DNA from: Scyliorhinus canicula
Lineage: Eukaryota
Length of the DNA stretch: 64,000 bases
Direction: 5' to 3'
Assembly: GCF_902713615.1 (NCBI RefSeq)
Contig: NC_052151.1
Coordinates: 17,285,238-17,349,237 of the forward strand
Numbering within the stretch: position 1 is the first letter of the stretch; each line of letters starts with the position of its first letter. Position numbers and translations under genes: made by a program. Shown here piece by piece: positions 4,222-61,118 of the stretch. Under the pieces are notes generated by a model, which searched no databases, was not told where the DNA came from, and was given only the letters and a program-made list of their open reading frames with translations.

Positions 4222-5520
4222 TACGGGATGTGGGCATCCTTGGTTAGGCCTGCATTTGTTACCCACCCCTAGTTGCGCTTCAAAAGGTGGTGGGGATTGC
4301 CTTCTTGAACCGCAGCAGTCCCCACGGTGTAGGTGCACCCACTGTATTGTTAGGGAGAGAATTCCAGGATTTTGCCCCCACGACAGTGAAGGAACGGTGA
4401 TATATTTCCAAGTCGGGGTGGTGAGTGACTTGGAGTGGAACCTCCAGATGGTGGAGTTCCCAGGTTATCTGCTGTTCTTGTCCTTCTAGATGGTAGCAGT
4501 CATGGGTTTGAAAGGTGCTGCCTAAGGAACCTTGGTGAGTTACTGCAGTGCATCTTGTACGCATGGCTGCCACTATTCGTCAGTGGTGGAGGGTTTGAAT
4601 GTTTGTGGAAGGCTGCTTTGTATTGGATGGTGTCAAGCTCCTAGAGTGTTGTTGGAGTTGCACTCACCCAGGTAGGTGGAGAGTATTCCATTGCACTTCT
4701 GACATGTGTTTTGCAGATGATGGACAGGCTTTGAGGCGGGGGGGGGAGAAAGAGTTACTCAGCGGAGGATTCTTAGCCTTTGATCTGCTCTGGTAGTCAC
4801 AGGTCAGGAGCCGAGTGACCCTGGCGAAATCCAAGCTGAGCATCCGTGAGCAGGTTATTGCTGAGTAAGTGCTGCTTGATAGCACTGTTTTTTGTTTACA
4901 TTAAAAAAAAGTTATTTTCTTTTCCAATTAAGGGGCAATTTAGCGTGGCCAATCCACCTAACCTGCACATCTTTGGGTTGTGGGGGGTGAAACCCACGCA
5001 GACATGGAGAGAATGTGCAAACTCCACATGGGCATTCACCCAGGGCCGGGATTCGAACCCAGGTCCTCAGCGCCGCAGTCCCAGTACTAACCACTGCGCC
5101 ACATGCCACACCCTCACTGCGCCATTCGCCGCCCCCTCGATAGCACTGTTGATGACTCCTTCCATCACTTTGCTGATGGAGAGTAGACAGATAGGGCAGT
5201 AATTGGCTGGGTTGGAGTTGTCCTGATTCTTGTGTACAGGACACACCGAGGCAATTTTACACATTGCCAGGTAAATGCCTGTGTTGTAGCTATACTGGAA
5301 CAGCTTGGCTAGGGATACGGCAAGTTCTGGAGCACAAGTCTTCAGTATTGTTGCTGAGATATTGTCAGGGCCCATAGCCTTTAAAGTATCCAGTGCCTTC
5401 AGCTGTTTCTTGATATCACGGAGTGAATCGTGTTGGCTGAAGATTGATGTGTGTGATGCTGGGGTAGGAGGAGACAGAAATGGATCATCCACTCGACACG
5501 TCTGGTTGAAGACTGCTGGA
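4222..5520 (-). mobile_element. Jockey/L2-CR1-group LINE fragment ('LINE-B')
   Basis: ORF 5067..5729 segment KAMGPDNISATILKTCAPELAVSLAKLFQYSYNTGIY..NYCPICLLS; 3' tail shared with 29100-31060. Confidence 0.8.
4905..5110 (-). mobile_element. HE1-like SINE, short form, nested in LINE-B
   Basis: tRNA head and V-core ending CCCCTTAATTGGAAA; GATAGCACTGTT occurs on both sides of the insertion. Confidence 0.8.
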
Positions 5521-14693: not shown

Positions 14694-15248
14694 ATATGTT
14701 GTTATGCAAAGCCCTGACCTCTGAAAACATAATCACAGAACTGTTACAGTGCAGGAAGAGGCTATTCGGCCCACCACGTCTGCATCAGAAATAATATGTG
14801 CAGCTTCTGTGCCTTTTTCAATTAAATAAAAACATGGAAAACAATTATTTCCTGGTACATTCCCCCGGCGGCACTCCAGCCAGGGATGAATTGCTTTTTT
14901 TGAATTTAAATAAAAGCTTGGAGAAAATGTATTCCATGGTGTATTCTCCATGGCAACATCTCAACCAGAATACACTTTCCAATCAATCAGCACCCTATTC
15001 TCATGCAGGTTAAATATTTGCTCCATTTGAAATTTGATATTCTTGTTTCTGTCCAAACAAGTGCAAGACATTAAGCTTTGAGAACATATCTTGTTGCGGC
15101 AATAACTGGAAACACTAGATGTAGATTTGTTCATCCGATTTTAACACTTGAAGCATCCCTTGCATTCATTCAACTGTCGTCCCATCATTGATGGGGTCTT
15201 CAGCTGTTCAAAACCCCCAACAACTCTCAGTTCCCCCAATTTATTTTA

Positions 15249-15449
15249 GAAAGTCTTACAACACCAGGTTAAAGCCTGGCAGGTTTGTTTCGAATCACTA
15301 ACTTTCGGAGCACAGGTCCTTCCTTTACCTGAGGAAGGAGCAGTGCTCCGAAAGCTAGTGATTCTAAACAAACCTGTTGGACTTTAACCAGGTGTTGTAA
15401 GACTTCTTACTGTGCTCACCCCAGTCCAACGCCGGCATCTAAACATCAT
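15249..15449 (+). mobile_element. Palindromic non-autonomous Penelope-derived element
   Basis: Inverted repeat 15251-15405 plus ~44-nt tail; 10-bp TSD ATTTATTTTA (15239-15248 / 15450-15459); same family as 29507-29702. Confidence 0.8.
15324..15362 (+). ncRNA. Minimal type I hammerhead ribozyme motif
   Basis: ttac-CUGAGGA-A-GGAGC(AGU)GCUCC-GAAA-GCU-A-guga; predicted cleavage after CUA at 15357. Confidence 0.7.
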
Positions 15450-15622
15450 ATTTATTTTAAGACCATCCTTAAAAATTACCACGGGATTACTTTTTCGCCA
15501 TCTAATATTTTTTATCCCTGCAGAAGTGTTTTTAAAAAAAAATGTTAGGCTCTGCAAGAATGCTGGCTGCAGCAACATAGAGTACCTAATATACTGGTGA
15601 GGCCATACCATTCAATTATTAC

Positions 15623-15634
15623 CTTGGTGTTTTC
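15623..15634 (-). CDS. Candidate 12-nt microexon GAAAACACCAAG
   Basis: Minus strand ACTAAC branch point ~28 nt upstream, TGC motifs, tttatattgcAG|exon|GTaata; frame-preserving. Confidence 0.55.
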
Positions 15635-15984
15635 CTGCAATATAAATGGAGTTTAATGCAAGTTAGTTGGAACTTAACCTGCACGGTGCTTCTGATTTAA
15701 TAGGAGATTGTATTTACTGAGCTACTTCTCAGAAAATCAGTGTCTGAGGAAGGTTAAACAGCAAATCCTTTTAATTGAAGTTTAAAAGCATGGACTTTAC
15801 CCTCAGAATCATAGAATGGTTACAGCATAGTGGGCCATTTGGTTGGTCGTGTCTGCACCAGCTCTCCATTGGAACAATTTTTCTACTGCCACTTCCCCGC
15901 CTTCACCCCATAAATCCTACATGTTCTTCCTTTCCAGATAACAATCCAATTTCCTCTTCAACACCTTGACTGAGTCTGCCTCCA

Positions 15985-16290
15985 CCCAGCTTACTCACTC
16001 TTCCAACTTCTTCCATCGGGCAGGAGATACAGAAGTCTGAGAACACGCACAAACAGATTCAAAAACAGCTTCTTCCCCGCTGTTACCAGACTCCTAAACG
16101 ACCCTCTTATGGACTGATGTAATCTCTTCACACGTCTTCACCCAATGCCTGTATCTATGCATTGACATTGTGTATTTTATGTTTGCCCTATTATGTATTT
16201 TATTTTCATGTATGGAATGATCTGTTTGGGCTACATGCAGAACAATACTTTTCACTATACCTCAGTACATGTGAAAATAAACCAATCCAA
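15985..16290 (+). mobile_element. Rex1/Babar-clade LINE 3' end
   Basis: LFQLLPSGRRYRSLRTRTNRFKNSFFPAVTRLLN plus a 3' UTR shared with 38755-39495. Confidence 0.8.
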
Positions 16291-16575
16291 CCACACTCAA
16301 AAGCAGTGCATTCCAGATCCTAACCACTTGTCATGTGAAAATGTTTTTCTTCATGTCACCATTGCTTCTTTTGTCAATGACTTTAAAGTTGTGTCCTTTA
16401 GCACTCTACTCTCTAACCAATGGGAACAGTTTCTCCCGGAACTACTCTGTCCGGACATATTATTTTGAATAACTCCGTCAAATCCCCCCGCAGCTTTCTG
16501 TTCTCCAAGGAAAGCAGTCCCAAATTCTCCAATCTATCTTTGGAACTGAAGCTCCTCATCCTTGGAACTATTTCC

Positions 16576-17090
16576 ATAGAATTCCTACAGTGTAGAAGGA
16601 GGCCATTTGGCCCACTGAGTAGGCACTGACCCAGGCGGCAAGGTGGTGCAGGTTAGCACTACTGCCTCACAGCACTGAGGACCCAGGTTAGATCCCAGCC
16701 CCAGGTCACTGCCCTTGTGGAGTTTGCACAGATGTGCAGGGTCGGTGAATTGGCCACGCTAAATTGCCCCTTAATTGGAAAAGAAGAATTGGGAACTCTC
16801 AATTTTAATAAAAAGTATGTCCTGACCCTCTGAAAGAGCACCCTACTGGGTCCACTAACCCACTCTATCCCTGTAACTCCACCGAACCTGCACATCTTTG
16901 GATACTAAGGGGCAATTTTGGCATTGTCAATCCACCCAACACGTACATCTTATGGGACTGTGGAGGAAACTAGAGCACTGGAGGAAAACCATGCAGACAC
17001 AGGGAAAAAGTGTAAACTCCACACAGTCACCCAAGGGCGGAATTGAACCTGGGCACGTGGTACTGTGAGGCAGCAGTGCTAACCACTGCC
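16576..17090 (-). mobile_element. HE1-like SINE with a second SINE (16632-16815, +) nested inside
   Basis: Tail at 16576-16631 resumes at CTGACCCTCTGAAAGAGCAC after a plus-strand short SINE. Confidence 0.75.
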
Positions 17091-17376
17091 AATTCTGTGC
17101 CAATTCACACTCTAAAGCCTTCACATCGTTCCTCAAACATGGTACCCAGATGTGGGCACAGTACTCCAGCTGAGCCCAAATCAATACAAGTTTAACATAA
17201 CCACCTCAGCCCTTTCCATCTCTTTATAGGTTCTGCTTCGTCCTGCACTTGAGTATGTCAACAGATAGCCTGCTCAGGACTAACCACTAATTCTGGTCAA
17301 AGTCTAGGGGTTGGGAAAGTGCAAGGCAAAATGAGACAAGACTAACAGCATGATAATCTAGCAACATAGTAATAAA

Positions 17377-17548
17377 GGGGCTAGTTTAGCACAGTGGGCT
17401 AAACAGCTGGCTTGCAATGCAGAACAATGCCAGCAGCGCAGGTTCAATTCCAGTACCGGCCTCCCCGAACAGATGCTGGAATGTGGAGACTAGGGGCTTT
17501 TCACAGTAACTTCATTGAAGTCTACTTGTGACAATAAGTGATTATTAT
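17377..17548 (+). mobile_element. SINE family C
   Basis: GGGGCTAGTTTAGCACAGTGGGCTAAAC head, GGTTCAATTCC, family C tail. Confidence 0.85.
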
Positions 17549-18079
17549 AAATCCTGATGCTGTCCTATTCACTTCACTGACAGAGGGCAAACGAAACATT
17601 TCACCTCATGCCAGAGATCAAATGCAGTCCAGGATGAACAAATACAATCTTCTGCTCTTTCAAACAAATTTTACATGCGATTCTACTAGCTAATATGCTT
17701 GGTTCAGGTGCAATCATAAGATAAACTCTCCATAATTCAGCACTAAACGGTCAGCAGCATTCAGGTTTGCCGAAACTTTACCAAAAACACATTGAAGTAA
17801 GGTGGTTTTGCATCTCCGTTCCAAATAAAAAAAGCTGTGGTACTACAAGTCCTACTGTCATAATGAAAACTGAAGAACTATTGTCAACTAAAATGCCAAA
17901 TGGATCTGTATTAAGTGAGCACAGGCAATGGAAAACAAGTCCCAGTTTCCTTTGTAAGGCTCTTGGTCATTCTGAAAGGGTCTCCACACAAAATAGCAAC
18001 CAATATTTTCTCTTTCAGATGCCAACCTAGTGAACACTTCTAATATCATCTGCTTTCTGCTAAAGTTTATTAGATTTGA

Positions 18080-19431
18080 TGTTAAAGCCAACTAATCAAA
18101 TTGGAAAACAAAGGTAGTTTTAAGGGATTTATATTTGTATTGGTAAACATGAGAAATAAGGTATAGTTTTAAGTGGGTTTAATTGGAAGGGTAAAAGCTA
18201 TAGTTAGACAAAGGTGTTTGTATACATGGAGGCTGGTTAAGTTCCAACTGCGATACTTTTGTGCTGCAAGGGTTACAATATGAAAAATAAATAGAAGGCA
18301 ACTACAGGCCCTTGAAAGGTTTAAAAAAAACTTTTACATTTTAGTTGTATATTTTGCAGTTGGAGACAGGAAATTGGGGACTGAACATCTTACAACACTG
18401 CCAGGAGAAGCTGGACAGACAAGAGAGTTGCAAAGATGCAGGTTTCCTAATGAACAAGATACAGTCCAGATAACTAGGGAATTGGAACAGAATGAACGTC
18501 TAAGTCAACTGGAGTTATGAGAACAGAGACCAAAGTATTGTTCAGAAGAATTCAAGGAAGAGTAAACAAAGTGTGCTGAGTTAAAGAGACAATTGCAGTA
18601 ACCATATTTTAAAATGGGACAGCAAACTTCAGGAGGTAGATAAAACGTATGATGCCATTTTAAGGGTCAGGGTATCGAGAGTTAAAGCAATTGTGAACAG
18701 TTTGTACAGCAGTCAAGTCAAAGAAATCCTACAGGGGGTGTAAATCCTGGACTGGATTCACTGTTAAAAGTGGAGCAGAAACTCTGGTTAAAAGAATGAT
18801 TTGGAAAACTTGGATTGGATCTTGGAATGCAAACTGCTAAGGGACAGCATTATTGAGAAAATAATTTGAAACCATGATTTTGGGAGAGGAGTTTTGAAAT
18901 TCTCATGTGACAATTATCTGGAGGGATTCAGATGAGAAATCCACAGACACTAACTTGGGTTCAGAGTGGAGTGAGTATTTGGCCACAGCCAATCTGTGTG
19001 CTTTAAGGGGACTGTGTGTTAATGAGACTATTACAGCCTAAGATGTACATTGCAATGATTGTTCCACAATTAATAAGGGGTTCGGGGTTATGGGGAGAAG
19101 GCAGGAGAATGCGGATGAGAAAATATCAGCCATGATTGAATGGCGGAGCAGACTCGATGGGCCGAATGGCCTAATTCTGCTCCTATGGTTTTATGGTAAT
19201 CAGTGTTAATCTTAAAATCTGTGTCTTGATAAGCTAAGGGGGGAGTATTGTATAATAATCCAACTTTTCATTTTTAATAAATGCTTTTATTCTTATTGTC
19301 AAAACTAATTAGAGGCCCTGTGAATTTGTTTTTCCACGTTTTATAAGAAAAGTAAAAGTTACAGCCTTTTGAGCCAGGGCTTAATTCTGAGATCTTCCTG
19401 TCCAGTTATAACATCAACTGGGATTGTAACA
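18080..19431 (+). mobile_element. Possible solo LTR containing a HER1 tail fragment (~19070-19197)
   Basis: TGTTA...TAACA terminal inverted ends and AATAAA near 19276; no clean TSD. Confidence 0.4.
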
Positions 19432-19820
19432 GAGATAAAATCATCTAAAATGAAAGGATACCTGGATTAATAATTTGTTAAGGCAAGCTGGAGAGTCAAG
19501 GACAAGATCAATGCACAGGACCAATAAATTATTTAAATTGTCAACACCAAGCAACGAAAATTCAAATCGAAGCAATTAGCATACTCAACTAAAAAGAAAT
19601 CTGTATGTACTTAAATCGATTGAGCACAGATGGTTTCATTGAACCAGTAACTCAATTCCTGCTGTACAATGGCTACTTTCAGGCTTTGGGAACAATGCTT
19701 TAGGCCTATCAGCTGACTGCAGAATTATACTAAAATCTTCCCTCCCCCACTACAGTGCACTGAATGTATCATGTACAATTCAGCACTTAAGCCACAAGAT
19801 TGACTCAGCAGTGGGCAGCA

Positions 19821-19860
19821 GGATCAGACATTGGACACCAGGATCAGACACTGGACACCA
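19821..19860. repeat. Tandem duplication of a 20-bp unit
   Basis: GGATCAGACAYTGGACACCA x2. Confidence 0.9.
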
Positions 19861-20194
19861 TAAGTATTTGCTGGATGACTGTCACATGCAAAATGCTGCC
19901 AAACAAAAATAGTGGGTGGGTTATGTTCCAGGTAAATTTAAAACCCTTGACTCGAAGAACACAGGAACAGGAGGACACCTTGCCCCTCAAGCCTCTTCTG
20001 CCATTCAATGATATCATGGTTGACCCAGGGCTTAATTCCATTTCCAGTCCTTGCCCGATATCCCTCAACCTTATGTTTAAAACTAACAATGGACCCAGCA
20101 TCAAATTTCAATGGGGGGGGGGGGGGGGGGGGGGGGGGGGAAAGAGAGAGAGAGAGAGAGTACTCTGAAAGAAGCAAAACCTCATTTAAAATTA

Positions 20195-20330
20195 AAGCAG
20201 ATCAAGGCAGGCCAGCAGCACGGTTCAATTCCTGTATCAGCCTCCCCGAACAGGCACCGGATTGTGGCAACTCGGGGCTTTTCACAGGAACTTCATTTGA
20301 AGCCTACTTGTGACAATAAACAATTTTCAC
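20195..20330 (+). mobile_element. SINE family C, 5' truncated
   Basis: AAGCAGGCCAGCAGCACGGTTCAATTCC...GAAGCCTACTTGTGACAATAA. Confidence 0.8.
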
Positions 20331-21067
20331 TCATCAGTTACTACTGCCTCATGTACTTAGACATAACTCTAACACCTCCAAGTAAGTGTTAACTCAGCGT
20401 TTTGCTGAGGGTCCAATCTCAAATGAAATCCGAGGACCATTTTCAGAAGTTATGCATCAATGTTTCTCACCTCTACATAATAGGCTCACAATTTCCAGTT
20501 TGCAAAAGGGTGGCATTTCCCCCATAATTGCAATGGGGTGGGGGTAAGCAAGCAACTTTAAAAGGAGCATTTTTACAGGCTTGGATTGAAATCCCTCCCT
20601 TCCAGTCCCACTGCAACACTCCTAGCTGGAGTAGTTTCACAGGCAGCAGGATCAGATCTTCACAGTTGTATGTAATCCATATGACCATCATTCAGGTGTG
20701 GACTTTTGCTGTATGCAAAGGGTGCCAACACAGCCAAGTCCAACCTTGCTCCCAGCAAAAATAATTGTCCTCTGTTTCCCATTTCTGTTTGGGAATCTGA
20801 TTCTGCACACTTGCACATCAATTTCTGACCTCAGATAATTAGAAAGTTGGGAAGATGCTCCCATTACATACAAAGTTAGATCTTCAGGCAAAGTAGAGCA
20901 GGGAGAAAAGAGAAGTAGTGAGTAACAAATAACAGGAACAGCAGTGAACTAGGTAGGTCAGGCAGAGACAAGAGTGTCTCCAAATTTGGGAGGGGAGGGA
21001 GGAGAATGTTTGATAGTATGAGGCGCAAGTCACTGAGAAAAACGTGAGAATGAACATCCTTTTTAAT

Positions 21068-21720
21068 AGTCTTCTTCTTGGGCAGTCGCTCAGGGTCGAG
21101 GATGAATTGCTTCCAGGTCAGGGGAGGTGGGTTCTGCGGTGGTGGAAAGTCCGATCCTGGATCCACACACTACCACATGTTTGGCAGGTGGTCTTTGATA
21201 AGGTGGGTGTGACGCTCTGGATTCTGCACTCTCTTTCTGCTGTTTACACTTGGCCTCCGCGCGCTCCACCCACGATGCTCAAGGTGTTTGGCACCTTCGC
21301 GGATGCTTTCTCTCCAGCTTGTGCGTTCTAAGGTAAGCGATTTCCACTTGCCGATGGGGATGCTGCATTTATTTAGGAAGGCTTTCAGAGTGTCCTTGTA
21401 GCTTTTCCTATGCCCACATAGTGATCATTTGCCTTGGAGGAGCTCAGAGTAAGGCACTTGTTTGGGGAATCTTGTGTCGAGCATGCGGGCAATGTGGCTC
21501 ACCCATCGTATGGTCAAGCATGACCAGTGCCTCAATACTGGGGATATTGGCCTGGGAGAGGACACTCACGTTGGTACACCTATCCTGCAACAAGATTTGC
21601 AGGATCCGCAGAGGTAACATTGGTGATATTCCTCCAAGGATTTGAAATGTCTGCTGTACATGGTCCATATTTCTGATGCACATAGGAGGGCGGGGACCAC
21701 GGCTGCTCTGTGGAAAACAT
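21068..21720 (-). mobile_element. RTE LINE 3' fragment
   Basis: RAAVVPALLCASEIWTMYSRHFKSLEEYHQCYL; DRCTNVSVLSQANIPSIEAL; KSYKDTLKA; ends in a GAA repeat. Confidence 0.85.
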
Positions 21721-22714
21721 GGGAATGACTGGTTAACTCATGCCAGAATTCAAAGCTTTGGTGGAATAGCAAAACTGAAAGGTTTCATACTGAATTGTGC
21801 TAGATACGTAAGTAAATATACTTCTATTATACACAAGGTATTTCTACTAAAATGATTGCATGTTGCTAAAATAGTGTTCCTGTTGCCAAACCTGTGACTA
21901 GTTAGCAAATTCTATTCGTCAACACTGGTCTTCGAACTGCAAAATGTCATTTTATAGCAGCTTTAAATTAGCAGCTTCCTTCTTTATATTACTGGTAATG
22001 AAAATCTTGTGTCTCATCTCATGAGCAGAAATATAATTATGTTTAAAGACCAAATCCAAATCTCTGAGCAGTATATGCATCTGTTGCACCCAGTGACGCA
22101 GCAAAATCTAGGTTTCACTGGTTTAAAAGAAATTTAAATTTAAACCCTATAAATTAAAAATGCTAGGATGCAGGCTCCAACAAATAAAACATAACTCAAG
22201 AATCCACAAACAGCAAATGACAAATTCACTCAGATTTCAATTTGTGGTTTACATTGTTTAAGGGAGAGATGGTCAGGAACGTAGAGAACTACTTCTTGCT
22301 CTTCAAAATAGTGCTTTTGCATTACCAATCTCGACTATTGCTAGTCTAACAGTTGACTGTTCAAAGTTTTCTGGAGCAATTCATTAATAAATAAGTTAAA
22401 ATAATCAACTAAAAATTAAGCTTTTAAGGATGAACTATTTTTTGAATCCAAGTACAAAATATCTGGTCTGGAACATATCTCACTGTTTACTTAACACAAA
22501 ATAAATGCAAGTGCCCTCTCTGTAGTCGACTTTTCAACGAGAACCCGTAAAAGACCAACTCCACAGTACATATTTAAAATAGAATAGCATCAGAATAGAA
22601 ATTAAATTTTATCCCAAACAATTTCAATATCTCTGGTCGATTTCTGTTCCTCCTTCCCTTTTCAGTCTATGTTGTGGTTTAATTCAAAGTAGAAAAGAAT
22701 TCATTGAAAAGCCG

Positions 22715-23055
22715 AATAGTGCAAAGGGTCCGGGTTCAATTCCGGCCTTGGGTGACTGTGTGGAGATGGCACTTCCTCCCCGTATCTACGTGGGTTTCCT
22801 CTGGGTGCTCCGGTTTCCTCTCAGTCCCAAAGATGTGCAGTTTAGGTGGAATGATCATGATAAAATTGCCCCCTGGTGCCCAGGGATGTACAAGTTAGGT
22901 GGGGTTACGAGGATAGGGTGGGGGATTGGGTCTGGGCGGGGTGCTATTTCAGAGGGTCGATGCAAACTCTGCGGGCCTGGGCGGGGTGGTTTTTCAGAGG
23001 GCCGTGCAGACTCAATAGGCCGAATGGTCTGCTTCTGCACTGCAGAAATTCTACA
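22715..23055 (+). mobile_element. HE1-like SINE with internal ~45-bp duplication
   Basis: V-core; CTGGGCGGGGTG...TTTCAGAGGG occurs twice. Confidence 0.8.
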
Positions 23056-23239
23056 GTTCTGTTTACCAATTAACGTTTGACTCACTAAATGAAGTGTTCT
23101 CCATTGCATAATATATTAATTCCTACAGATACAAAAGACTTGTCTTGGAAAGCAAGACAGACAGCAATGACTCACTCAAATGGTAATACTCCCCTTGGCT
23201 TTAGTTTCCATGGCAGCTTTTTTTACATCACACAATAAC

Positions 23240-25700
23240 AGAAAATATAATGCAGAAGAGGCCCTTTGGCCCATCGAGTCTGCACTGACACATGAAAAAC
23301 ACTTGACCTACATACCAAATTCCATTTGCTAGCACTTTGCCTATCGGCTTTAATGTTATGACGTGCCAGGTGCTCATCAGGTACATGTTGGTAACTTCGA
23401 CATGATCTCCCCGCTTTTGTAATCTATGTCTCCATTGATAAAGGCATATGCCTTTTTCACCACCCTATTAACTTCCCTCCTGGCTTCAGAAATCGACAGA
23501 CAAACACGTCAAGGTCCCTTTGTTCCTCGGAACAACCCAGTATCATGCCGCTCTTTGAAAACATTTTTGCCACATTTCTCCTTCCAAAGTACAATAATCA
23601 CCTCTCACTTTTCAAGGTCAAATTCCACGTGCCACTTATCTCATTTGACCATCTCATCTATATCTTCCTGCAATCCAAGACACTCAACCTCTCCCGGCCA
23701 ATATTTGTGTCATCCGCAAACTTACTGATCCTACCCCCCATATCGTATCTATATCGCTTATATAAATGACAAGCAATGGGGACCAGCACAGATCCCTGTG
23801 GTACGCCACTGGACATTGGCTTCCAGTCACCAAAGCAGCTATCTGTCATCACATTCTGTCTCCTACAGCTAAGCAATTTTTTAATCCACCATATCAAATT
23901 ACCCTGTATCCCATGTGCATTTGCCTTATTCATAAGTCTCCCATGTGGGACCTTGCCAAAGCTTTTGCTGAAATCTATGTAAAATTCATCAACTGCACTA
24001 CCCTCATCTGTACAACTGGTCACCTCCTCAAAAATTGAAAATTGAAAATCGCTTATTGTCACAAGTAGGCTTCAAATGAAGTTACTGTGGAAAGCCCCTA
24101 GTCGCCACATTCCGGCGCCTGTTCGGGGAGGCTGGTACGGGAATTGAACCGTGCTGCTGGCCTGCCTTGGTCTGCTTTCAAAGTCAGCGATTTAGCCCTG
24201 TGCTAAACAGCCCCTTCAAGAAATTCAAGCAAATTCAAGAACAATGCACAGGAACAGGCCCTTCGGTCCTCCAAACCTGTACCAGTCATGATACCACCTT
24301 TGGCCAAAACCCTCAGCACTTCCTAGTGCCGTATCTTCTATGCCCATCGTATCCATGTGTTTGTTAAGATGCCTTTTGAACACCGTTAATATATCTGCTT
24401 CCACAACCTCCCCCGGCAGCGCATTCCAGGCACTCACCACCCTGTGTGTAAAAAAAAACCTGCCTCATACATCTCCTCTAAACTTGCCCCGCAGACCTTA
24501 AACCTATGCCCCCTGGTGACTGACCCCTCCACCCTGGGAAACAGTGCCTCCCCATCCACTCTATCCATGCCCCTCAATCTTGTAGACCTGTATCGGGTCA
24601 CTCCTCAACCTCTGTCATTCTAATGAAAACAGTCAGAGTCTATTCAGCCTGTCCGCATAGCTAGACCCTCCAAACCAGGCAACATCCTGGTAAACCTCCT
24701 CTGTAGGATGACCTCCCTCTGACAAAGTTATGTTGCCTATTCCTGATCAAAATTTAGATTCTCTCCTTCAGAATTTTCTCCAATAGTTTCCCTACCACTG
24801 ATGCGAGACTCACTGGTGTGTAGTTCCCTGGCTTATCTGTACAACCCTTCTTAAATTGTGGAACCACATTAGCTGTTCTTCAGTCCTCTGCCACCTTTCC
24901 CGTGGCCAAAGAATAATTTAAAATTTGGATCAGAGCCCCTGCAATCTCCTTCCTTGCTGCTCACAACAGCCTGGGACACAATTCATCCGGACCTGCCGGT
25001 TTGTCCACTTTTAAGCTTGCCAATACCTCCAATACCTTGTCCCTCCCTCTGTCAATTTGCTCAAGAACCTCACAGTCTCTCTCCCAGATTTCTACATCTA
25101 CCTCCTCATTCTCTTGGGTGAAGACAGATGTGAAGTATTCGTTCAACACCCTGCGAATGTCCTCTGGCTCCACCCGTAATTTGCCCCCTTGCCTATTCTT
25201 TCCCCTGGTTGTCCTCTTCCCATTGATATACTTATAGATTATCTTGGGATTTCCCGTACTTTTATCAGCCAGAGCTTTCTCGTATCCTCTCATTGCTCCG
25301 ATAATTATTTCCTTAAACTCCATCCTGCACTTTCTGTACTCCATCAAAGCCTCCGTTGATTGGCTCCCCTTGTACTTGCTAATAGCCTCTCTTTTCCTTC
25401 TCATTGTATCCTGAATATCTCTGGTCATCCATGGTTCTCTGGGCTTGTTACACCTTCCCATCACCCTAGATGGAATATGTTGGGCCTGTACCCTCCACAT
25501 TTCCTTTTTGAATGCCCCCCACTCCAACCGCCACTGTTCTTTTGTAGACTTCCCTATAAGTAACTCTTCCCAGTCTTCCTCATTTTATTAAAATCCACTC
25601 TCCCCCAATCCAAAACCGTTTTTTGCAACTTGTTGATTTCTTTATGTATAACAAATTTAAATTGCACCACATTGTGGTTACTATCACTAAAATGCTCCCT
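23240..25700 (-). mobile_element. CR1/HER1 LINE ORF2 remnant with nested SINE C (24032-24213) and HER1 3' piece (24236-24705)
   Basis: DFSKSFGKVPHGRL, SGVPQGSVL, ISKFADDT, AGPDELCPRLL, EPWMTRDI. Confidence 0.85.
24032..24213 (-). mobile_element. SINE family C, full length
   Basis: Near-identical to 60742-60925. Confidence 0.9.
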
Positions 25701-26369
25701 CTCCAAAAACCTCAACTGAAGAAACAGGAATTCACCCAGTTGAAACATTTCAAACTCACCAATATATAAGCAGACAGAATCACAGCACAGAAGGAAGCCA
25801 CCCTGCCCACCATGTGACTGTCGCTCTTAAAGAGCTAGCTACTTAGTTCCATTTCCCTGCTCTTCTCTCAATTTCCCAATATTTTCAACTTGAAATATTT
25901 AGTCACTTCCCTTTTGAAAGACATAACATTCTGCAAAATCCCCCTTGCTGTTTTGACAATGGTACTTAATTTAAGTCCTTTAGTTTATAATTCAGCAACG
26001 AGCAGAAATAAATTTTCCCTTATTACTGCCTCAAAACTATCAATTTTGTATAGTATTGCTTATTTCTCCTGGTTCTAATGAAAAGAGCCCAAGGTTTTTT
26101 AGTCACTCACTGTTGGTTTCAATACACGAAATACCAGTACACAGGCTGAGTCACACTGACTTTCTTGATCATTCAAATTGTTGAATTAGTAATGTGTACA
26201 ACCATTGTAAATTGCAGAGATACATAATTACAACATCACCAAATTGGCAAGATAAAAATAGGTACATTTTACATTGACGATGAAAGCTTAATTTTGCGCA
26301 GTTACATTTGCAAAATGCTGCACTTGATTTAATTACTCATTCGACCATCGTCTTTGCAGGGAGGTTTTC

Positions 26370-26402
26370 TAGTGCTGTTGGGGAGTGTTTAAACTAATTT
26401 GG

Positions 26403-26437
<35 letters not shown>

Positions 26438-26920
26438 CAGTGGGATCCTGAAAGAAGGTTCAGCAGGGGGAGATACACAGCCAAAATTAGGAGAGACAGC
26501 AAGTGAGTCAGGGAGGCTTAGACGTTCTTGACCAGATAAGTCACAAGGGAGTATGGCAAGATTGAATGGATGCAAGTGTAATGCAAGGAGTCTGACCAAC
26601 ATGCTAGGTGAGTTGAGGGCACAAATTAAAACATGGGGGTTTGATGTTATTGCTGTCACTGAGACATGGTTAAGAGGGGGGCAGGATTGGAAGTTCAATA
26701 TTCCAGGATATAGGATCATCAGGCGAGACAGGGGTGTGGTAAGAAATAGGGGTGCTGCAATTTTGATCAGAAAATCAATTACAGCAGTAAGGAAGGACAA
26801 CATCATAGAAGCCTTACGGATACAAGTTTTAAACCAAAAAGGAGCAATCACATTGCTGGGAGTATTCTATAGGTTCCCCAATAGTCTGGAAAAAATAGAA
26901 GAGCAAATATGTAGGGAGGC
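26370..26920 (+). mobile_element. CR1 ORF1 end / ORF2 endonuclease N-terminal fragment
   Basis: NARSL..LGELRAQIKTWGFDVIAVTETWL..QDW..NIPGY..IRRDR. Confidence 0.85.
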
Positions 26921-26924
26921 AAGG

Positions 26925-27860
26925 CCAAGACGTCGGCTCCCAAGTTTTCTCTCAATTTCGCAAAAGTTTCAACTTGAAATATTTGGTCAGTTCCCTTTTT
27001 AAAGAAGATCGCCACATCTGGACTCATCAGCACCCTCATTTGTAATACTTCTGACATGATGCCAGCAAACCTCTGCCAGAAACATCTCAGCCTTGGACAT
27101 GCCCAAAACATATATATATGGTTCGCAGGACCCCTCTCACAGCACCCACACCTATCCTGCACCTCCTCAAGGAACCTGCTCATCCGGGTCACAGTCATGT
27201 GTGCCCTGTGGACCACTTGAAATTGTATCAGGCTGAGCCTGGCGTACGGCAAGGATGCATAAACTCTCCTCAGGACCTCCTCCCATAACCCAGCCTCCAA
27301 CTCCCCACCCAGCTCTTCCTCCACTTTCTTTTCACCTCCTCTATCGGGGCTCCCTCCCACTCCATCAGCTCCTTATAGATCTCCGAGACCTTCCCCTCTC
27401 CTACTCCTGTTCTCGACCACCTTATCCTGTAGCCCATTGGGCGGCAGGTACGGCAAGGTTGAAACCTGCCTCCACACAAAATCCCTCACCTGCAGGTAGC
27501 GGAAGCCATTCCCCCTGGCAACTCAAACACCTCCTCCAGCCTCAGGAAACCCTCATCAAAAAAGGGATGCCCAAATCTCCCGATCCCTGCCCGCATCCAC
27601 CCCGAAATGCCCCCTTGGAACAAACCGGTGGTTATCACATATGGGCACCCACACTGATGCCCCCTTTAATCCCATATGCTGCCTCCACTGTCCCCATACT
27701 TCAGGGCTGCCACTGCTATCGGGCTTGTGGAGTACCGAGATGGCGAGAACAGCAGAGGTGCCATCAATATTGCCCCCCAAACTAGTGTCCTTACATGAAC
27801 TCCACCCGTTCCCATACCTACCCCTCCCCCACTATCCACGTCTTGACCATCACAATATCA
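26925..27860 (-). mobile_element. L1-clade LINE ORF2 C-terminal fragment
   Basis: ARLSLIQFQVVHRAHMT..C..C..GPANHIYMFWACP; same family as 40226-42452. Confidence 0.85.
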
Positions 27861-28294
27861 AGTGCAGACTTGATGGGCTGAATGGCCTCATGCACTGGGG
27901 GATTCTGTGATTCACAAAGTATTCATTTAGAACCCTACCTACATCCTCTGGTTCCACACACAAATTACCACTCTGGTTCTTAATGGGCCCTACTCTTTCC
28001 CTAGTTATCCTTTTGCACTTACTGTACTTGTATAAAGCAGCTTAGGATATTCCTTTATTATACCTGCCAGTATACTTTCAAGTCCCGTTCTTACTCTCCT
28101 AATTTACTTTTTAAGTTCACTCTTGCACATTTTATACACCTTTCGTGCTTCTGCTGTTTCGAAGCCTCCCATTTCTTTTTATTCAATGCTGTATCTCCCC
28201 CGATATTCAGGGTTCACACTTTTTCTTTATTGGAACATGTTAGGCCTGTACTCTCCCTATTTCCTCCTCGAATGCGTCCCACTGTTCTGTCACA

Positions 28295-28299
<5 letters not shown>

Positions 28300-28332
<33 letters not shown>

Positions 28333-28500
28333 AGTAACACCTTTTCCCACCTGCGGGGTTTCACCGGGATCTCTGCATTCACCTTTTTGAAGAACACCTT
28401 GGGAATAAAGATTGGGAGACTCTGGAAAACAAACAAAAATCTTGGAAGGACTGTCATTTTAACTGTCTGTACCCGTCCCGCCAATGACGGGAGCAGACAC
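28300..28500 (-). mobile_element. L1-clade fragment
   Basis: LAGRVQTVKMTVLPRFLFVFQSLPIFIPK. Confidence 0.8.
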
Positions 28501-29506
28501 TTTTAAGTAAAGCTGAATTTCATCAACTATTACTGGGTGGCGAATAGTATGGTCAATTCACCTAGTTTGCACATCTTTTGGTGCGGAGAACCCGGCGAAA
28601 ACTGAAAAGGTAGAATTCCGAATGGACTACAGAAGATACAAAATGGATGCCGCCTGATATAAAATGAACTCTAAAAGTCAATATTCTTGACCCTATGTTA
28701 TTATCAGTGCCTTCTGCTGAAGTAGTAAAACTTTGTGCAAAACAAGTGATCCACAACCAGATGCATCTGGAGAGACAATGGGCAGTTGGCAACCTTTGCT
28801 CAATGCCTGTATTCTTAGCTATTTGTAACTGACAAAGGAGCCCCAAATTAAGGAACTAGCAAGGAATGAGGAAGGACATGTTTCAACGTGGCTGGGCTAT
28901 TGACCCCATGGCTTTATGTAACCGTTATCTATGTAATGAATTGATTGGGTAAGGCAAACTTCCAATTAGAGGCTATAGGAGCTAACTTGTAGCCATTTAT
29001 GGCATTAAAGATGCATGTCATGAATTTTGACACAAACAGAATTGATTGGGTAAATGTAAATGCAAACCAATTCCGCTTTCCTTCTGTATATTAACCCAGT
29101 GCGACCTCAGCTCAGGTGAGAAAAGGTGCTGCACAGACCAGGCTCTACAAACATCCCCATCCTCAATGATGGAGGAGCCATATATGTGCAAAAGACAAGG
29201 CTGAAGCATTTGCAAAAATCTTCAGTCAGACACACCGAATGATGATCCATCTCGGCCTTCTTTTGAGGTCCCCAGCATCACAGATGTCAGTCTTCAGCCA
29301 ATTTGATTCACTCATGCAATATCAAGAAATGGCTGAAGGCACTGAATACTGAAAAGGCGATGTTCCCTGATAATATTCCAGCAATAGAACTGAAGATTTG
29401 TTGTCCAGACCTTGCCGTACCCCTAGCCCTACTGTTCTAGGACAGCTGCAATACCAACATCTACCCAGCAATGTGGAAAACTGCCCAGGTGTGTCATTTA
29501 CACAAG

Positions 29507-29702
29507 GTTAAAGTTCAACAGGTTTGTTTCGAATCACTAGCTTTCAGAGCGCAGCTCCTTCCTCAGGTGATCAGATTCACCTGATGAAGGAGCTGCGCTC
29601 CAAAAGCTAATGATTCGAAACAAACCTGTTGGACTTTAACCTGGTGTTGTAAGACATCTCACTGTGCCCACCCCAGTCCAACGCCGGCATCTCCACATCA
29701 TG
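29507..29702 (+). mobile_element. Palindromic non-autonomous Penelope-derived element nested in LINE-B
   Basis: Inverted repeat ~29505-29642 plus the same tail as the 15249 copy; 8-bp TSD TACACAAG (29499-29506 / 29703-29710). Confidence 0.85.
29532..29572 (-). ncRNA. Minimal type I hammerhead ribozyme motif
   Basis: GAUCAC-CUGAGGA-A-GGAGC(UGC)GCUCU-GAAA-GCU-A-GUGAUU with 6-bp stem I; the plus-strand mirror core (29581-29609) has GAAA>AAAA. Confidence 0.7.
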
Positions 29703-31344
29703 TACACAAGAAACAGGACAAATTTAACCCAGCCAATTACCGCCTTATCAGTCTATTCGGCATCTTCAGCAAAGTGATGGAAGGAGTCCTCAACAGTGCT
29801 ATCATGCGGCACTCACTCAGCAATAACCTGCTCACGGAGGCTCAGCCAGGGTCACTCAGCTCCTGACCTCATTGCAACATTAGTTCGAACATGGACAAAA
29901 GAGTAGAATGCCAGAGATGAGGTTTGAGTGACCGCCCTTGACATCAAGGCAGCATTTGACCAAGTACATAAAGGAGCCCTAGCTAAACAGGAGTTAATGG
30001 GAATCGAGAAGAAAATCTCCGCTGGTTGGAGTCACACCTGACACAAAGGAAAATGTATGGTGATTGGAGGTCAATCATCTCAGCTCCAGGACATCACTGC
30101 AAGGGTTCCTCAGGGTTCCTGTGCCAAACCATCTTTAGCTGCTTCATCAATGACCTTTCTTCCATCATAAGATCAGAAGTGGGGATGTTCGCAGATGACT
30201 GCACAATGTTCAGCACCATTCGGAGTCCTCAGACAATGAAGCAGTCCATGCCCAAATGCAGCAAGTCCTGGACAATTTCCAGGCCAGGGCTGACAAGTGG
30301 CAAGTTACATTTGTGCCACACAAGTTCCAGACAATGACCATCTCCTACAAGAGAGGATCTAACAATTACCTCTTAACATTCAATGGCATTGCTATCGCTG
30401 AACCCCCGCAAATCAACATCCCTGGGGGTTACCACTGATGAGAAACTGAACTGTACTAGCCACATTAGTACTGTAGCTACTAAGGCATGTCAAAGGCTAG
30501 GAATCGTATGACGAGCAACTCACTTCCTGACCCCCCCCGCCAAGCCTGTCCACCATCTACAAGGCGCAAGTCAGGAATGTACTTGCCTGGATGAGTGCAG
30601 CTCCAACAACACTCAAGAAGCTCGTCACCATCCAGGGTAAAGCAGCCCGCTTGATTGCCCCCCCTTCCACAAACATTCAAACCCTCCAATACTGAACTTT
30701 GGCAGCCGTGTACACCATCTACAAGATGCACAGCAGTAACTCGCCAAGGTTCCTTAGACAGCACCTTCCAAACCCATGACAACTACCATCTAGAAGGGCA
30801 AGAGCAGCAGATACCTAGAAACCCCACCACCTGCAAGTTCCCCTCCAAGTCACTCACCACCCTGACTTGGAAATATATTGCCTAGTCACTGGGGCAGAAT
30901 CCTGGAACTCCCTCGCTTACAGCACTGTGGGTGTACTTACACGTTGGGACTGCAGCGGTTCAAGAAGGCAGTTCACCACCACATTCTGAAGGGCAAATAG
31001 GGATGGGCAATAAATGCTGGCCTAACCAGTGACACCTGCATCCCACAAAATGAATTTTTAAAAGTATCTCAGCTTTTACCCCACATTCGCATGGGCCTAT
31101 GAAGTCATCAGTTCTTTGCAAATCTGTTTGCAACACAAATGACAAACATGGAGATATGTAATAAGCTCTCCTTTTCTATGTGAATGCACGGAGTGTACAA
31201 AGCTAGTTAATCCAGTAATTTCTGCTTCCCCCACTTACTGTTTTAATTACTAATAAAAACCAGTTCCCCAATGCCTCAGTGGGTAAATAGAGCTTCTGGT
31301 ATATTTGACTATGCAGACAAAGAAGATGCAAAGTTGTGTCATTG

Positions 31345-31519: not shown

Positions 31520-32150
31520 ACATAGACAGTACAGGCCCTTCAGCCCACAATGTTGCACTGACCACTTATCCTAATCCAAGATCAACCTAACCTACACCCC
31601 TTCAATTTACTGCTATCAATGTGCCGTCTAAGAATCACTTAAATGCCTCTAATGACTGTCTACACAACCTCTGCTGGCAGTGCATTCCACGCACCCACCA
31701 TTCTCTGTGTAAAGAACCAAACTCTGACATCTCCCCTATACCTTCCTACAATCACCTTAAAATTGTGTCCCCCTCATAGCAGCCATTTCCACCCTGGGAA
31801 AAAGTCTCTGGCTATCCACCCTATCCATGCCTCTCATCACTTTGTACACCTCTATCAAGTCACCTCTCTTCCTTCTTCTCTCCAGTGAGAAAAACCCTAG
31901 CTCAATCAACCTTTCTTCTAAGGCCATACCATCCAGTCCCGGCAACATCCTGGTAAATTTCATCTGCACCCTCTCCAAAGCATCCACATCCTTCCTATAA
32001 TGAGGCAACCAGAACTGGACACAATATTCCAAGTGTGGTCTAACCAGGAATTTATAAAGCTGCAGCAAACCTCGCGGCTCTTAAACTCAATCCCCCTGTT
32101 AATGAAAGTCAACACACCATACGCCTTCTTAACAACCCTATCAACCTGGG
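31520..32150 (-). mobile_element. CR1/HER1 3' fragment
   Basis: LYKFLVRPHLEYCVQFW...LERRRKRGDLIEVYK. Confidence 0.9.
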
Positions 32151-49944: not shown

Positions 49945-51000
49945 ACTGCTTCATTATCTGAGGAGTTGCGAATGGTGAACATTGTTTGCAGGTGACTGCA
50001 CATCCCCACTTCTGACAGAAGGGAGATCATTGATGAAGCAGCTGAAGATGGTTGGGCCTAGGACACTACCCCGAGGAACTCCTGCAGTGATGTCCTGGAG
50101 CTGAGATGATTGACCTCCAAACACCCTAGCCATCTTCCTTTGTGCCTGGTATGACTCCAACCAATGGAGAATCCCCCCCCCCCCCCCTGATTCCCATTAA
50201 CTCCAATTTAGCTAGGGCTCCTTGATGCCATACTCGGTCAATCGCTGCCTTGATGTCAAGGGCAGTCACTCTCACCTCATCTCAGGCATTGAGCTCTTTT
50301 GTCCATGTTTGAACCAAGGCTGTAATGAGAGGTGACCCTGACGGAACCCAAACTGAGCTTCTGTGAGCAGGTTAGTGGTGAGCAAGTGTCACTTTATAGC
50401 ACTGCTAATGACTCCTTCCATCACTTTTCCGATGATGGAGAGTAGACTGATAGGGCGGTAATTGGCTGGGTTGTATTTGTCCCGTTTGTGTACAGGACAC
50501 ACCTGGGAAATGTTCCACATTGCCGGGTAGATGCCAATGTTGTAGCTGTACTGGGAGAGCTTGGCCAGGGGTTCAGCCAGTTCTGGAGCACAAGTCTTCA
50601 TGTCTATTGCTGCGATATTGTCAGGGCCCATAGCCTTTGCAGCATCCAGTGCCTTCAGCTGTTTCTTGATATTAGATGGAGTGATTCAAATTGGCTGAAG
50701 ACTGACATTTGTGATGCTGGGGACGTCCGAAGGAGAACGAGATGTATCATGCACTCAGCACTTCTGACTGAAGATCGTTGTGAATGCTTCAGCCGTGACT
50801 TTTGCACATATGTTGTGGGCTCCTCCATCATTGAGGATGGGGGTATTTGTGGAGGTTCCTCATCCAGTGAGTTGTCTAAATATCCACCACCATTCACGGC
50901 TGGATGTGGCAGGACTACAGAGTTTGGATCTGATGCGTTTGTTGTGCAATCACTTAGCGCTGTCTATTACTTGCTGCTTGTACTGTTTGGCATACAAGTA
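49945..51000 (-). mobile_element. LINE-B RT fragment
   Basis: GPDNI...CAPELAEPLAKL..NYRPISLLS; AGVPRGSVLGPTIFSCFINDL. Confidence 0.85.
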
Positions 51001-60741: not shown

Positions 60742-60925
60742 TGAAATGAAATGAAAAGAAAATCGCTTATTGTCACAAGTAGGCTTCAAATGAAGTTACT
60801 GTGAAAAGCCCCGAGTCGCCACATTCCGGCGCCTGTTCGGGGAGGCTGGTACAGGAATTGAACCGTGCTGCTGGCCTGCCTTGGTCTGCTTTCAAAGCCA
60901 GCGATTTAGCCTGGTGTTAAACCAG
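60742..60925 (-). mobile_element. SINE family C
   Basis: Full copy. Confidence 0.9.
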
Positions 60926-60949
60926 GTGCAAAAACATGAGAATTCTATG

Positions 60950-61118
60950 CTCACTGGGCTAAATCGCTGGCTTTTAAAGCAGACCAAGCAGGCCAGCAGC
61001 ACGGTTTGATTCCCGTACCAGCCTCCCCGAACAGGGGACGGAATGTGGCGACTAGGGGCTTTTCACAGTAACTTCATTGAAGCCTACTCGTGACAATAAG
61101 CGATTTTCATTTCATTCA
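60950..61118 (+). mobile_element. SINE family C
   Basis: Head-to-head with the previous copy. Confidence 0.9.

Follow-up and report, generated by a model that had tools for sequence, protein, structure and literature searches.

Penelope-like insertions and the shark copies

Insertions of Penelope-like elements (PLEs) are strongly 5′-truncated and often carry an inverted, likewise 5′-truncated copy attached head to head; the junction is palindromic, a tail of 30-40 bp is present at one end only, and the target-site duplications (TSDs) measure 8-10 bp (PMC3846280; 10.1101/2021.04.23.441226). In a rotifer example, the tail measures 31 bp and the inverted pseudo-long terminal repeat (pseudo-LTR) falls short of the direct one by 37 bp (PMC3846280; 10.1101/2021.04.23.441226). 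The locus treated here lies in the shark Scyliorhinus canicula, on contig NC_052151.1 (positions 17,285,238 to 17,349,237); this whole 64-kb stretch of DNA, hereafter the window, contains two ~200-bp palindromic copies of a mobile element with a minimal hammerhead ribozyme motif. A hammerhead, an inverted partner, a one-sided tail and variable TSDs are an anatomy already published for PLEs, and the shark copies are that insertion architecture shrunk to the last 125 nt of the element. The family is without a published name as far as could be found.

The comparison with Pen2a_Av of Adineta vaga, with Penelope/Poseidon and with Naiad is close. Common to all are the head-to-head inverted and 5′-truncated copy, the palindrome at the junction, an inverted copy which is shorter by the tail of one end, TSDs of 8-13 bp and microhomology at the 5′ side. 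The shark copies differ in having no open reading frame (ORF) or second direct pseudo-LTR; they represent only ~125 nt of the end of an element.

The integration reaction has been reconstituted in vitro for PAc, a Poseidon element of Anolis carolinensis, whose ribozyme cuts 26 nt into the ORF (PMC11167929). The AC-rich stem-loop where reverse transcription of PAc begins lies at +111-118, 85-92 nt past the cut, and RNA sequence located 3′ of the start site, up to +172, is needed for activity or protein binding (PMC11167929). AT-rich sites with ATT are cleaved, both strands are cut and extended, and two start sites bracket the tail (PMC11167929). Animal retrozymes, on the other side, are reported to be derivatives of PLE pseudo-LTRs; they are present in the one cartilaginous fish sampled, and the retrozyme units reported for Chondrichthyes have an average length of 363 bp (preprint 10.64898/2026.07.22.740005). 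With the metazoan non-LTR retrozymes (PMC7229834; 10.64898/2026.07.22.740005) the shark copies would share the short size, the absence of an ORF, a type I hammerhead, a relation to PLE pseudo-LTRs and, presumably, mobilisation by PLEs.

The window was scanned by blastn with each copy and by nhmmer with a profile made from the arms, and both searches showed only two copies, at 15249-15449 (copy 1) and 29507-29701 (copy 2), with ~82-84% identity to each other (blastn). The two palindromes with a tail ending in CATCAT, first pointed out in an earlier note on this DNA, are therefore real, with arms of 71-74 nt and tails of 44-55 nt. Their anatomy is directly established from the inverted repeats and from the alignment of the four arms. 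In copy 1, the left arm (15249-15324, minus strand) is an inverted partial copy without tail, and it is followed by a 7-nt fold-back loop (15325-15331) overlapping stem I and C3-G5 of the plus-strand ribozyme core, by the right or sense arm (15332-15405, plus strand) and by a 44-nt tail (15406-15449, plus strand) with the terminal CATCAT. The inverted repeat itself pairs 15251-15324 with 15332-15405 (74 nt, 88% complementary). In copy 2, the left arm (29507-29570, minus strand), again a partial inverted copy lacking the tail, a 6-nt loop (29571-29576), the right or sense arm with an inactivated core (29577-29647, plus strand) and the tail (29648-29701, plus strand) follow each other in the same order, and 29500-29570 pairs with 29577-29647 (71 nt, 92% complementary). 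The terminal CATCAT ends at 29701.

In the four-way alignment, performed with both orientations, sequence extends past the right arm only, over 44 nt for copy 1 and over 54-55 nt for copy 2, and the two copies converge on the common terminus ...GGCATCT..ACATCAT. The last 35 nt are composed of A+C by 71%, compared to 50% for the window. The distance from the predicted ribozyme cut to the 3′ end is directly established as 92 nt in both copies; in copy 2 it is counted from the cut-equivalent position 29609/29610.

Each copy is flanked by its own TSD, in agreement with the proposal of independent insertions. Copy 1 lies between two identical 10-mers, ATTTATTTTA, at 15239-15248 and 15450-15459; the target is AT-rich and includes ATT. 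For copy 2, the duplication spans 29494-29506 on the left and 29698-29710 on the right, 13 nt with one mismatch, and the first 4 nt of the right side (TCAT) are common with the element's end. The sequence previously given as its TSD, TACACAAG, is the perfect core (29499-29506) of a longer duplication. At the empty site, the paralogs of the long interspersed nuclear element (LINE) which hosts this copy have ...TCCTGTACACAAGAA..., and from this the duplication measures 9 nt (GTACACAAG, with one mismatch), or as much as 13 nt when TCAT is included. Accordingly, copy 2 ends at 29701 instead of 29702. TCAT is a microhomology between target and element end, and the outer end of the left arm similarly overlaps the target by microhomology (ACAC.AGG). 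When the flanks are joined minus one duplication, they align without interruption to the LINE copies at 50786-50189 and 5512-5139. Copy 2 is an insertion, as these empty-site paralogs directly establish.

The host LINE is decayed and extends from 26553 to 30337 (plus strand). Its apurinic/apyrimidinic (AP) endonuclease (Pfam Exo_endo_phos) is located upstream of copy 2, at 26553-27002, and the FADD motif of its reverse transcriptase downstream, at 30026-30337. At least two further copies of this LINE family exist in the window, at 50189-50786 and 5139-5512 (both minus strand), and they are ~78-80% identical. Among the scanned ORFs with a length of 120 aa or more, this AP endonuclease gave the sole match above the Pfam cut-off. 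Both palindromic copies, of ~200 bp, are devoid of any ORF for a reverse transcriptase or a GIY-YIG endonuclease, and thus they are stubs or non-autonomous copies, not elements.

Further copies were sought through the translated open frames of the element. A word-indexed protein search with these frames gave no candidate. An exhaustive search of representative proteins retrieved a single protein, P0001, from the 1001-bp contig Ga0262470_19730 (hereafter L005) of JGI metagenome 3300026616; it is a spurious ORF which reads through the repeat, and the contig evidently comes from a shark-like host and not from a microbe. The L005 copy, at 149-225, consists of a single 5′-truncated arm whose CATCAT end precedes 12 extra bases; it is flanked by an 11-nt TSD and shows a 9-nt terminal near-duplication (TCTACATCA / TCTACAGCA). 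Being single-armed, it is uninformative on the fold-back question. All three copies end in ...ACATCAT and have TSDs of 10, 9-13 and 11 nt, respectively. The fixed 3′ end, the variable 5′ end and the variable TSD length indicate a retroelement and not a DNA transposon. Palindromic copies would rarely be called as genes, because of the in-frame TGA in the CUGA box with no later start codon. At the DNA level, a pattern scan with the arm gave no match in public metagenome and viral contigs. The tail pattern had no match in viral contigs; it matched four bacterial contigs, which were rejected as chance since they are GC-rich and agree in a 21-mer only. A weak nhmmer match within the window, at 60887-60973, was likewise rejected, as it belongs to a different repeat.

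The hammerhead motif

In the minimal hammerheads of PLEs, which have the CUGANGA and GAAA boxes, one base stays unpaired between positions 9 and 10.1, G10.1-C11.1 is the closing pair, helix II has 5 bp and helix I is short, with 4-6 bp (PMC4209133). They have no loop 3, and positions 15.2-16.2 form a palindromic AGCU, with helix III possible only between two molecules (PMC4209133). These motifs are mostly dispersed in truncated elements, as single ones or as dual hammerheads on opposite strands (PMC4209133, Cervera and De la Pena 2014), and they cleave weakly or only with protein (PMC4209133; PMC11167929). The predicted ribozyme of the shark has all the above structural traits; it differs in that the two motifs of a copy are only ~10-30 nt apart and back to back.

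A descriptor of the minimal hammerhead was applied to both strands of the window. In detail, it asked for CUGANGA or its U3-A8 variant, allowed for a bulge, and then required 4-9 bp of helix II, GAAA and a palindromic insert at helix III with U and a non-G base after it; helix I needed 3 bp or more. Exactly two matches were found, 15329-15357 on the plus strand and 29566-29538 on the minus strand, and none in 100 shuffles. With a stricter descriptor only the first one remained, again with none in 200 shuffles. These are the two cores that had been recognized in the earlier note, which described them as intact; this holds for both, with one G-U wobble in copy 2.

Both cores read CUGAGGA-A-GGAGC-NNN-GCUC(C/U)-GAA-AGCU-A, followed by GUGAUU(C), and they contain the catalytic boxes C3-U4-G5-A6-N7-G8-A9, G12-A13-A14 and an H17 other than G; the motif is directly established. 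In the core of copy 1, CUGAGGA and one extra A lead into helix II (5 bp, with a loop of 3 nt), after which come GAA and then AGCU before A17. The predicted cut falls between 15357 and 15358, and a 4-bp stem I is formed by 15325-15328 paired with 15358-15361. In copy 2, the near-intact hammerhead covers 29532-29572 (minus strand), matches the relaxed descriptor and has a 6-bp stem I between GAUCAC (29572-29567) and GUGAUU (29537-29532). The extra A after A9 is present in all four arms; the pair G10.1-C11.1 of copy 1 (plus strand) corresponds to the G10.1-U11.1 wobble in copy 2 (minus strand), which is the only departure of that core. AGCU stands directly before A17 in both cores. With this palindrome and no loop 3, a monomer is unable to close helix III.

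The catalytic boxes are damaged in the mirror arms, as had been noticed previously. In copy 1, the left-arm remnant (15324-15299, minus strand) has altered helices II and III and is without C3-U4-G5, because the fold-back of this copy cuts them away. In copy 2, the right-arm core (29581-29609) carries a change of G12 to A at a CpG and of the first stem I base from G to A. A usable core is found in only one arm per copy, and this does not support the suggestion of a working ribozyme on each strand. Across the four arms, helix II shows loop variation or damaging changes only, with no compensatory pair.

In its minimum-energy fold, a single arm forms stems I and II. The RNA of the full element is predicted to fold as one hairpin of -111 to -122 kcal/mol, which agrees with the view that the antisense arm buries the ribozyme in a long duplex. 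The hammerhead is probably a passenger from the pseudo-LTR of its parent and is predicted to be inert here, because it would be locked in a ~70-bp hairpin in the transcript, with no partner for a dimer. Such long hairpins may supply double-stranded RNA when they lie inside transcribed introns.

The five bases after the cut are complementary to the last five of the element, at 15358-15362 / 15445-15449 in copy 1 and at 29610-29614 / 29697-29701 in copy 2. They read GUGAU (AUGAU in copy 2) and AUCAU, respectively. This complementarity may be fortuitous, or it may go back to a master that was circularly permuted or arranged in tandem.

Origin of the palindromes

Both loci are probably old, dead-on-arrival inserts produced by the reverse transcriptase-endonuclease of this shark's PLE. 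The template would be the 3′-terminal ~125 nt of a PLE-type RNA, that is, the minimal dimer-type hammerhead of the pseudo-LTR and a further 92 nt ending in the AC-rich stretch where reverse transcription would start. Each strand of the target would prime a complementary DNA (cDNA). One cDNA would start at the distal site and include the tail, and the other would start ~44-55 nt further in, leaving the tail out. The outcome would be a palindrome with a one-sided tail, made anew at each insertion, with no palindromic master being copied. Two-strand priming and the construction of the palindrome at each insertion are what we infer from published PLE work. The spacing from cut to start, 85-92 nt in PAc, corresponds to the 92 nt of both shark copies; AC-richness of the start region is also common, as is an AT-rich target containing ATT in the case of copy 1. 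The cleavage and extension of both strands together with the two start sites of PAc would explain a one-sided-tail palindrome, an explanation offered here and not in the PAc paper. No ATG is present at helix II of the shark copies, and the likeness described here is one of geometry. By analogy with PAc, the copies would be without the RNA sequence required for renewed mobilisation. The earlier attribution to a mobile, Penelope-related, hammerhead-bearing sequence is in line with all this, since motif, one-sided tail, inverted partner and TSDs agree.

Several observations weigh against this origin. PLE descent, which is likely on balance, is based on motif and architecture and not on homology of sequence. 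The Rfam hammerhead models (types I, II, III, HH9 and HH10) had no match on the window at gathering thresholds, nor on the two 500-nt regions with the copies at E up to 10, so the Infernal check suggested for this locus came out negative; the Rfam matches at the palindromes were only spurious microRNA-hairpin models. This silence is expected, because the motif is without the helix III hairpin. The tails of 44 and 54-55 nt are longer than those published for PLEs. Counted on the sequences, the left arm has its outer end 48-50 nt past the cut position in copy 1 and 31-38 nt past it in copy 2; these ends differ by ~10-17 nt and do not define a precise second start site. Finally, the start of each sense arm falls only a few nt from the 5′ edge of the ribozyme, which random 5′ truncation would rarely achieve. 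This suggests a template RNA with a defined 5′ end or, alternatively, an inherited palindrome.

The latter possibility was the central proposal of the earlier note, in which the ~200-bp palindrome may be a fixed non-autonomous unit with a ribozyme on each strand. On this model, the entire palindrome would be transcribed and then retrotransposed, its left arm being shortened by 5′ truncation. The fold-back axes of the two copies are indeed no more than ~10 nt apart, on the immediate 5′ side of the hammerhead, and both left arms end 44-55 nt before full length. The fold-back points are close and not identical. The tips are offset by 9-13 nt, copy 1 being without 13 nt which copy 2 has at its tip, and the loop of copy 1 cuts into the CUGA box. 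Scatter of the inversion points had been named as the sign of ordinary, per-insertion inversions, and within the two copies of the window the tips are close yet different. Among the 71 columns shared by the four arms, there is none in which both left arms agree against both right arms; one column separates copy 1 from copy 2, and the rest are private changes. This pattern fits construction at each insertion and perfect palindromic masters alike, and no arm-specific substitution common to both copies supports a fixed unit. In addition, PLE integration regularly yields the same architecture, whatever the size of the insert, a retrotransposed copy would be without the sequence 3′ of the start site (in PAc, start at +111-118 and need up to +172), and a transcript with so stable a hairpin would be a poor template and a poor ribozyme. 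With tips and left ends both variable, a fixed palindromic unit is unlikely.

The source of the template RNA could also have been a dedicated, ORF-less, retrozyme-like parasite of Penelope, with masters consisting of tandem or circular ~125-nt units and with unit-length copies. The start of the sense arms at the ribozyme edge favors such a source. So does the 3′ end ACAUCAU, which resembles the 5′ strand of stem I (GAUCAC, AUUCAC) and pairs with the GUGAU past the cut in the minimum-energy fold of both copies; PLE-derived retrozymes are moreover placed in a cartilaginous fish by the preprint cited above. Retrozymes, however, are tandem with circularising monomers, whereas the shark copies are solitary and inverted, and no tandem copy of the unit was found in the window by blastn or nhmmer. 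The terminal resemblance is of just 5-6 nt and was spotted post hoc, neither the sense unit nor the RNA left after cleavage folds more stably than shuffles (z = -0.2 to -1.4), and the units known from Chondrichthyes are on average far from ~125 nt. Such a parasite, with which the 5′ and 3′ ends of the copies would coincide at one point of a circularly permuted unit, is accordingly an improbable source. A somewhat better, still tentative, case can be made for the 125-nt piece being the whole RNA of an ORF-less Penelope parasite with its 5′ end at the ribozyme edge, in which case the small copies would be in vivo footprints of a dimeric PLE enzyme which primes reverse transcription on both strands of the target, with two different start sites.

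An origin outside the Penelope group seems very improbable. It would involve either a short interspersed nuclear element (SINE) mobilised by a LINE and inverted by twin priming, or a miniature inverted-repeat transposable element (MITE) with terminal inverted repeats, the hammerhead likeness being due to chance. The silent Rfam models, the absence of a PLE gene nearby and the fact that an unrelated repeat of the window (60745-61116) is likewise a head-to-head palindrome are in its favor. Twin priming, however, joins different, non-overlapping segments of an RNA, and the arms in the shark are the same 71-74 nt. A MITE needs symmetric ends and a constant TSD length, in contrast to the one-sided extension of 44-55 nt and the three different TSD lengths found here, and the L005 copy has a single, 5′-truncated arm. 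No tRNA or other RNA polymerase III head of a SINE was found in the copies. As for chance, the full descriptor, which comprises non-catalytic features typical of PLEs, had no match in the shuffles.

Insertion by the PLE machinery thus remains the preferred explanation, and its weight is modest: one family, from a shark, is added to the many genomes with truncated, inverted, hammerhead-bearing PLE stubs. The copies are very short, and consequently their two ends, their junction and their tail are resolved to the single base. A census of the family across the genome would be a cheap natural data set on the in vitro model of PLE integration, with both strands and two start sites. Two-strand priming from two start sites is so far known only in vitro, from the Anolis element.

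Other repeats of the window

The unrelated palindrome at 60745-61116 is a near-perfect one of ~370 bp. Its arms, 60789-60879 and 60988-61078, have a length of 91 nt and are 93% complementary, and inverted matching continues at 60750-60789/61077-61116 and at 60880-60916/60952-60988. The repeat unit includes a stretch similar to the 3′ end of a tRNA (...GGTTTGATTCCCGTACCAGCCTCCCC...). Simple-repeat ends of the ATGAA/TTCAT type are found at both outer sides, which makes the structure symmetric, unlike the Penelope stubs. This palindrome is an indication that head-to-head fold-back copies are not exclusive to the Penelope family in this DNA.

A separate LINE is represented by an ORF at 31757-32068 (minus strand), on the strand opposite to that of the LINE hosting copy 2. 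It corresponds to the C-terminal region of a CR1-like LINE (...LEYCVQFW...ERVQ...LERRR..GDLIEVYK...).

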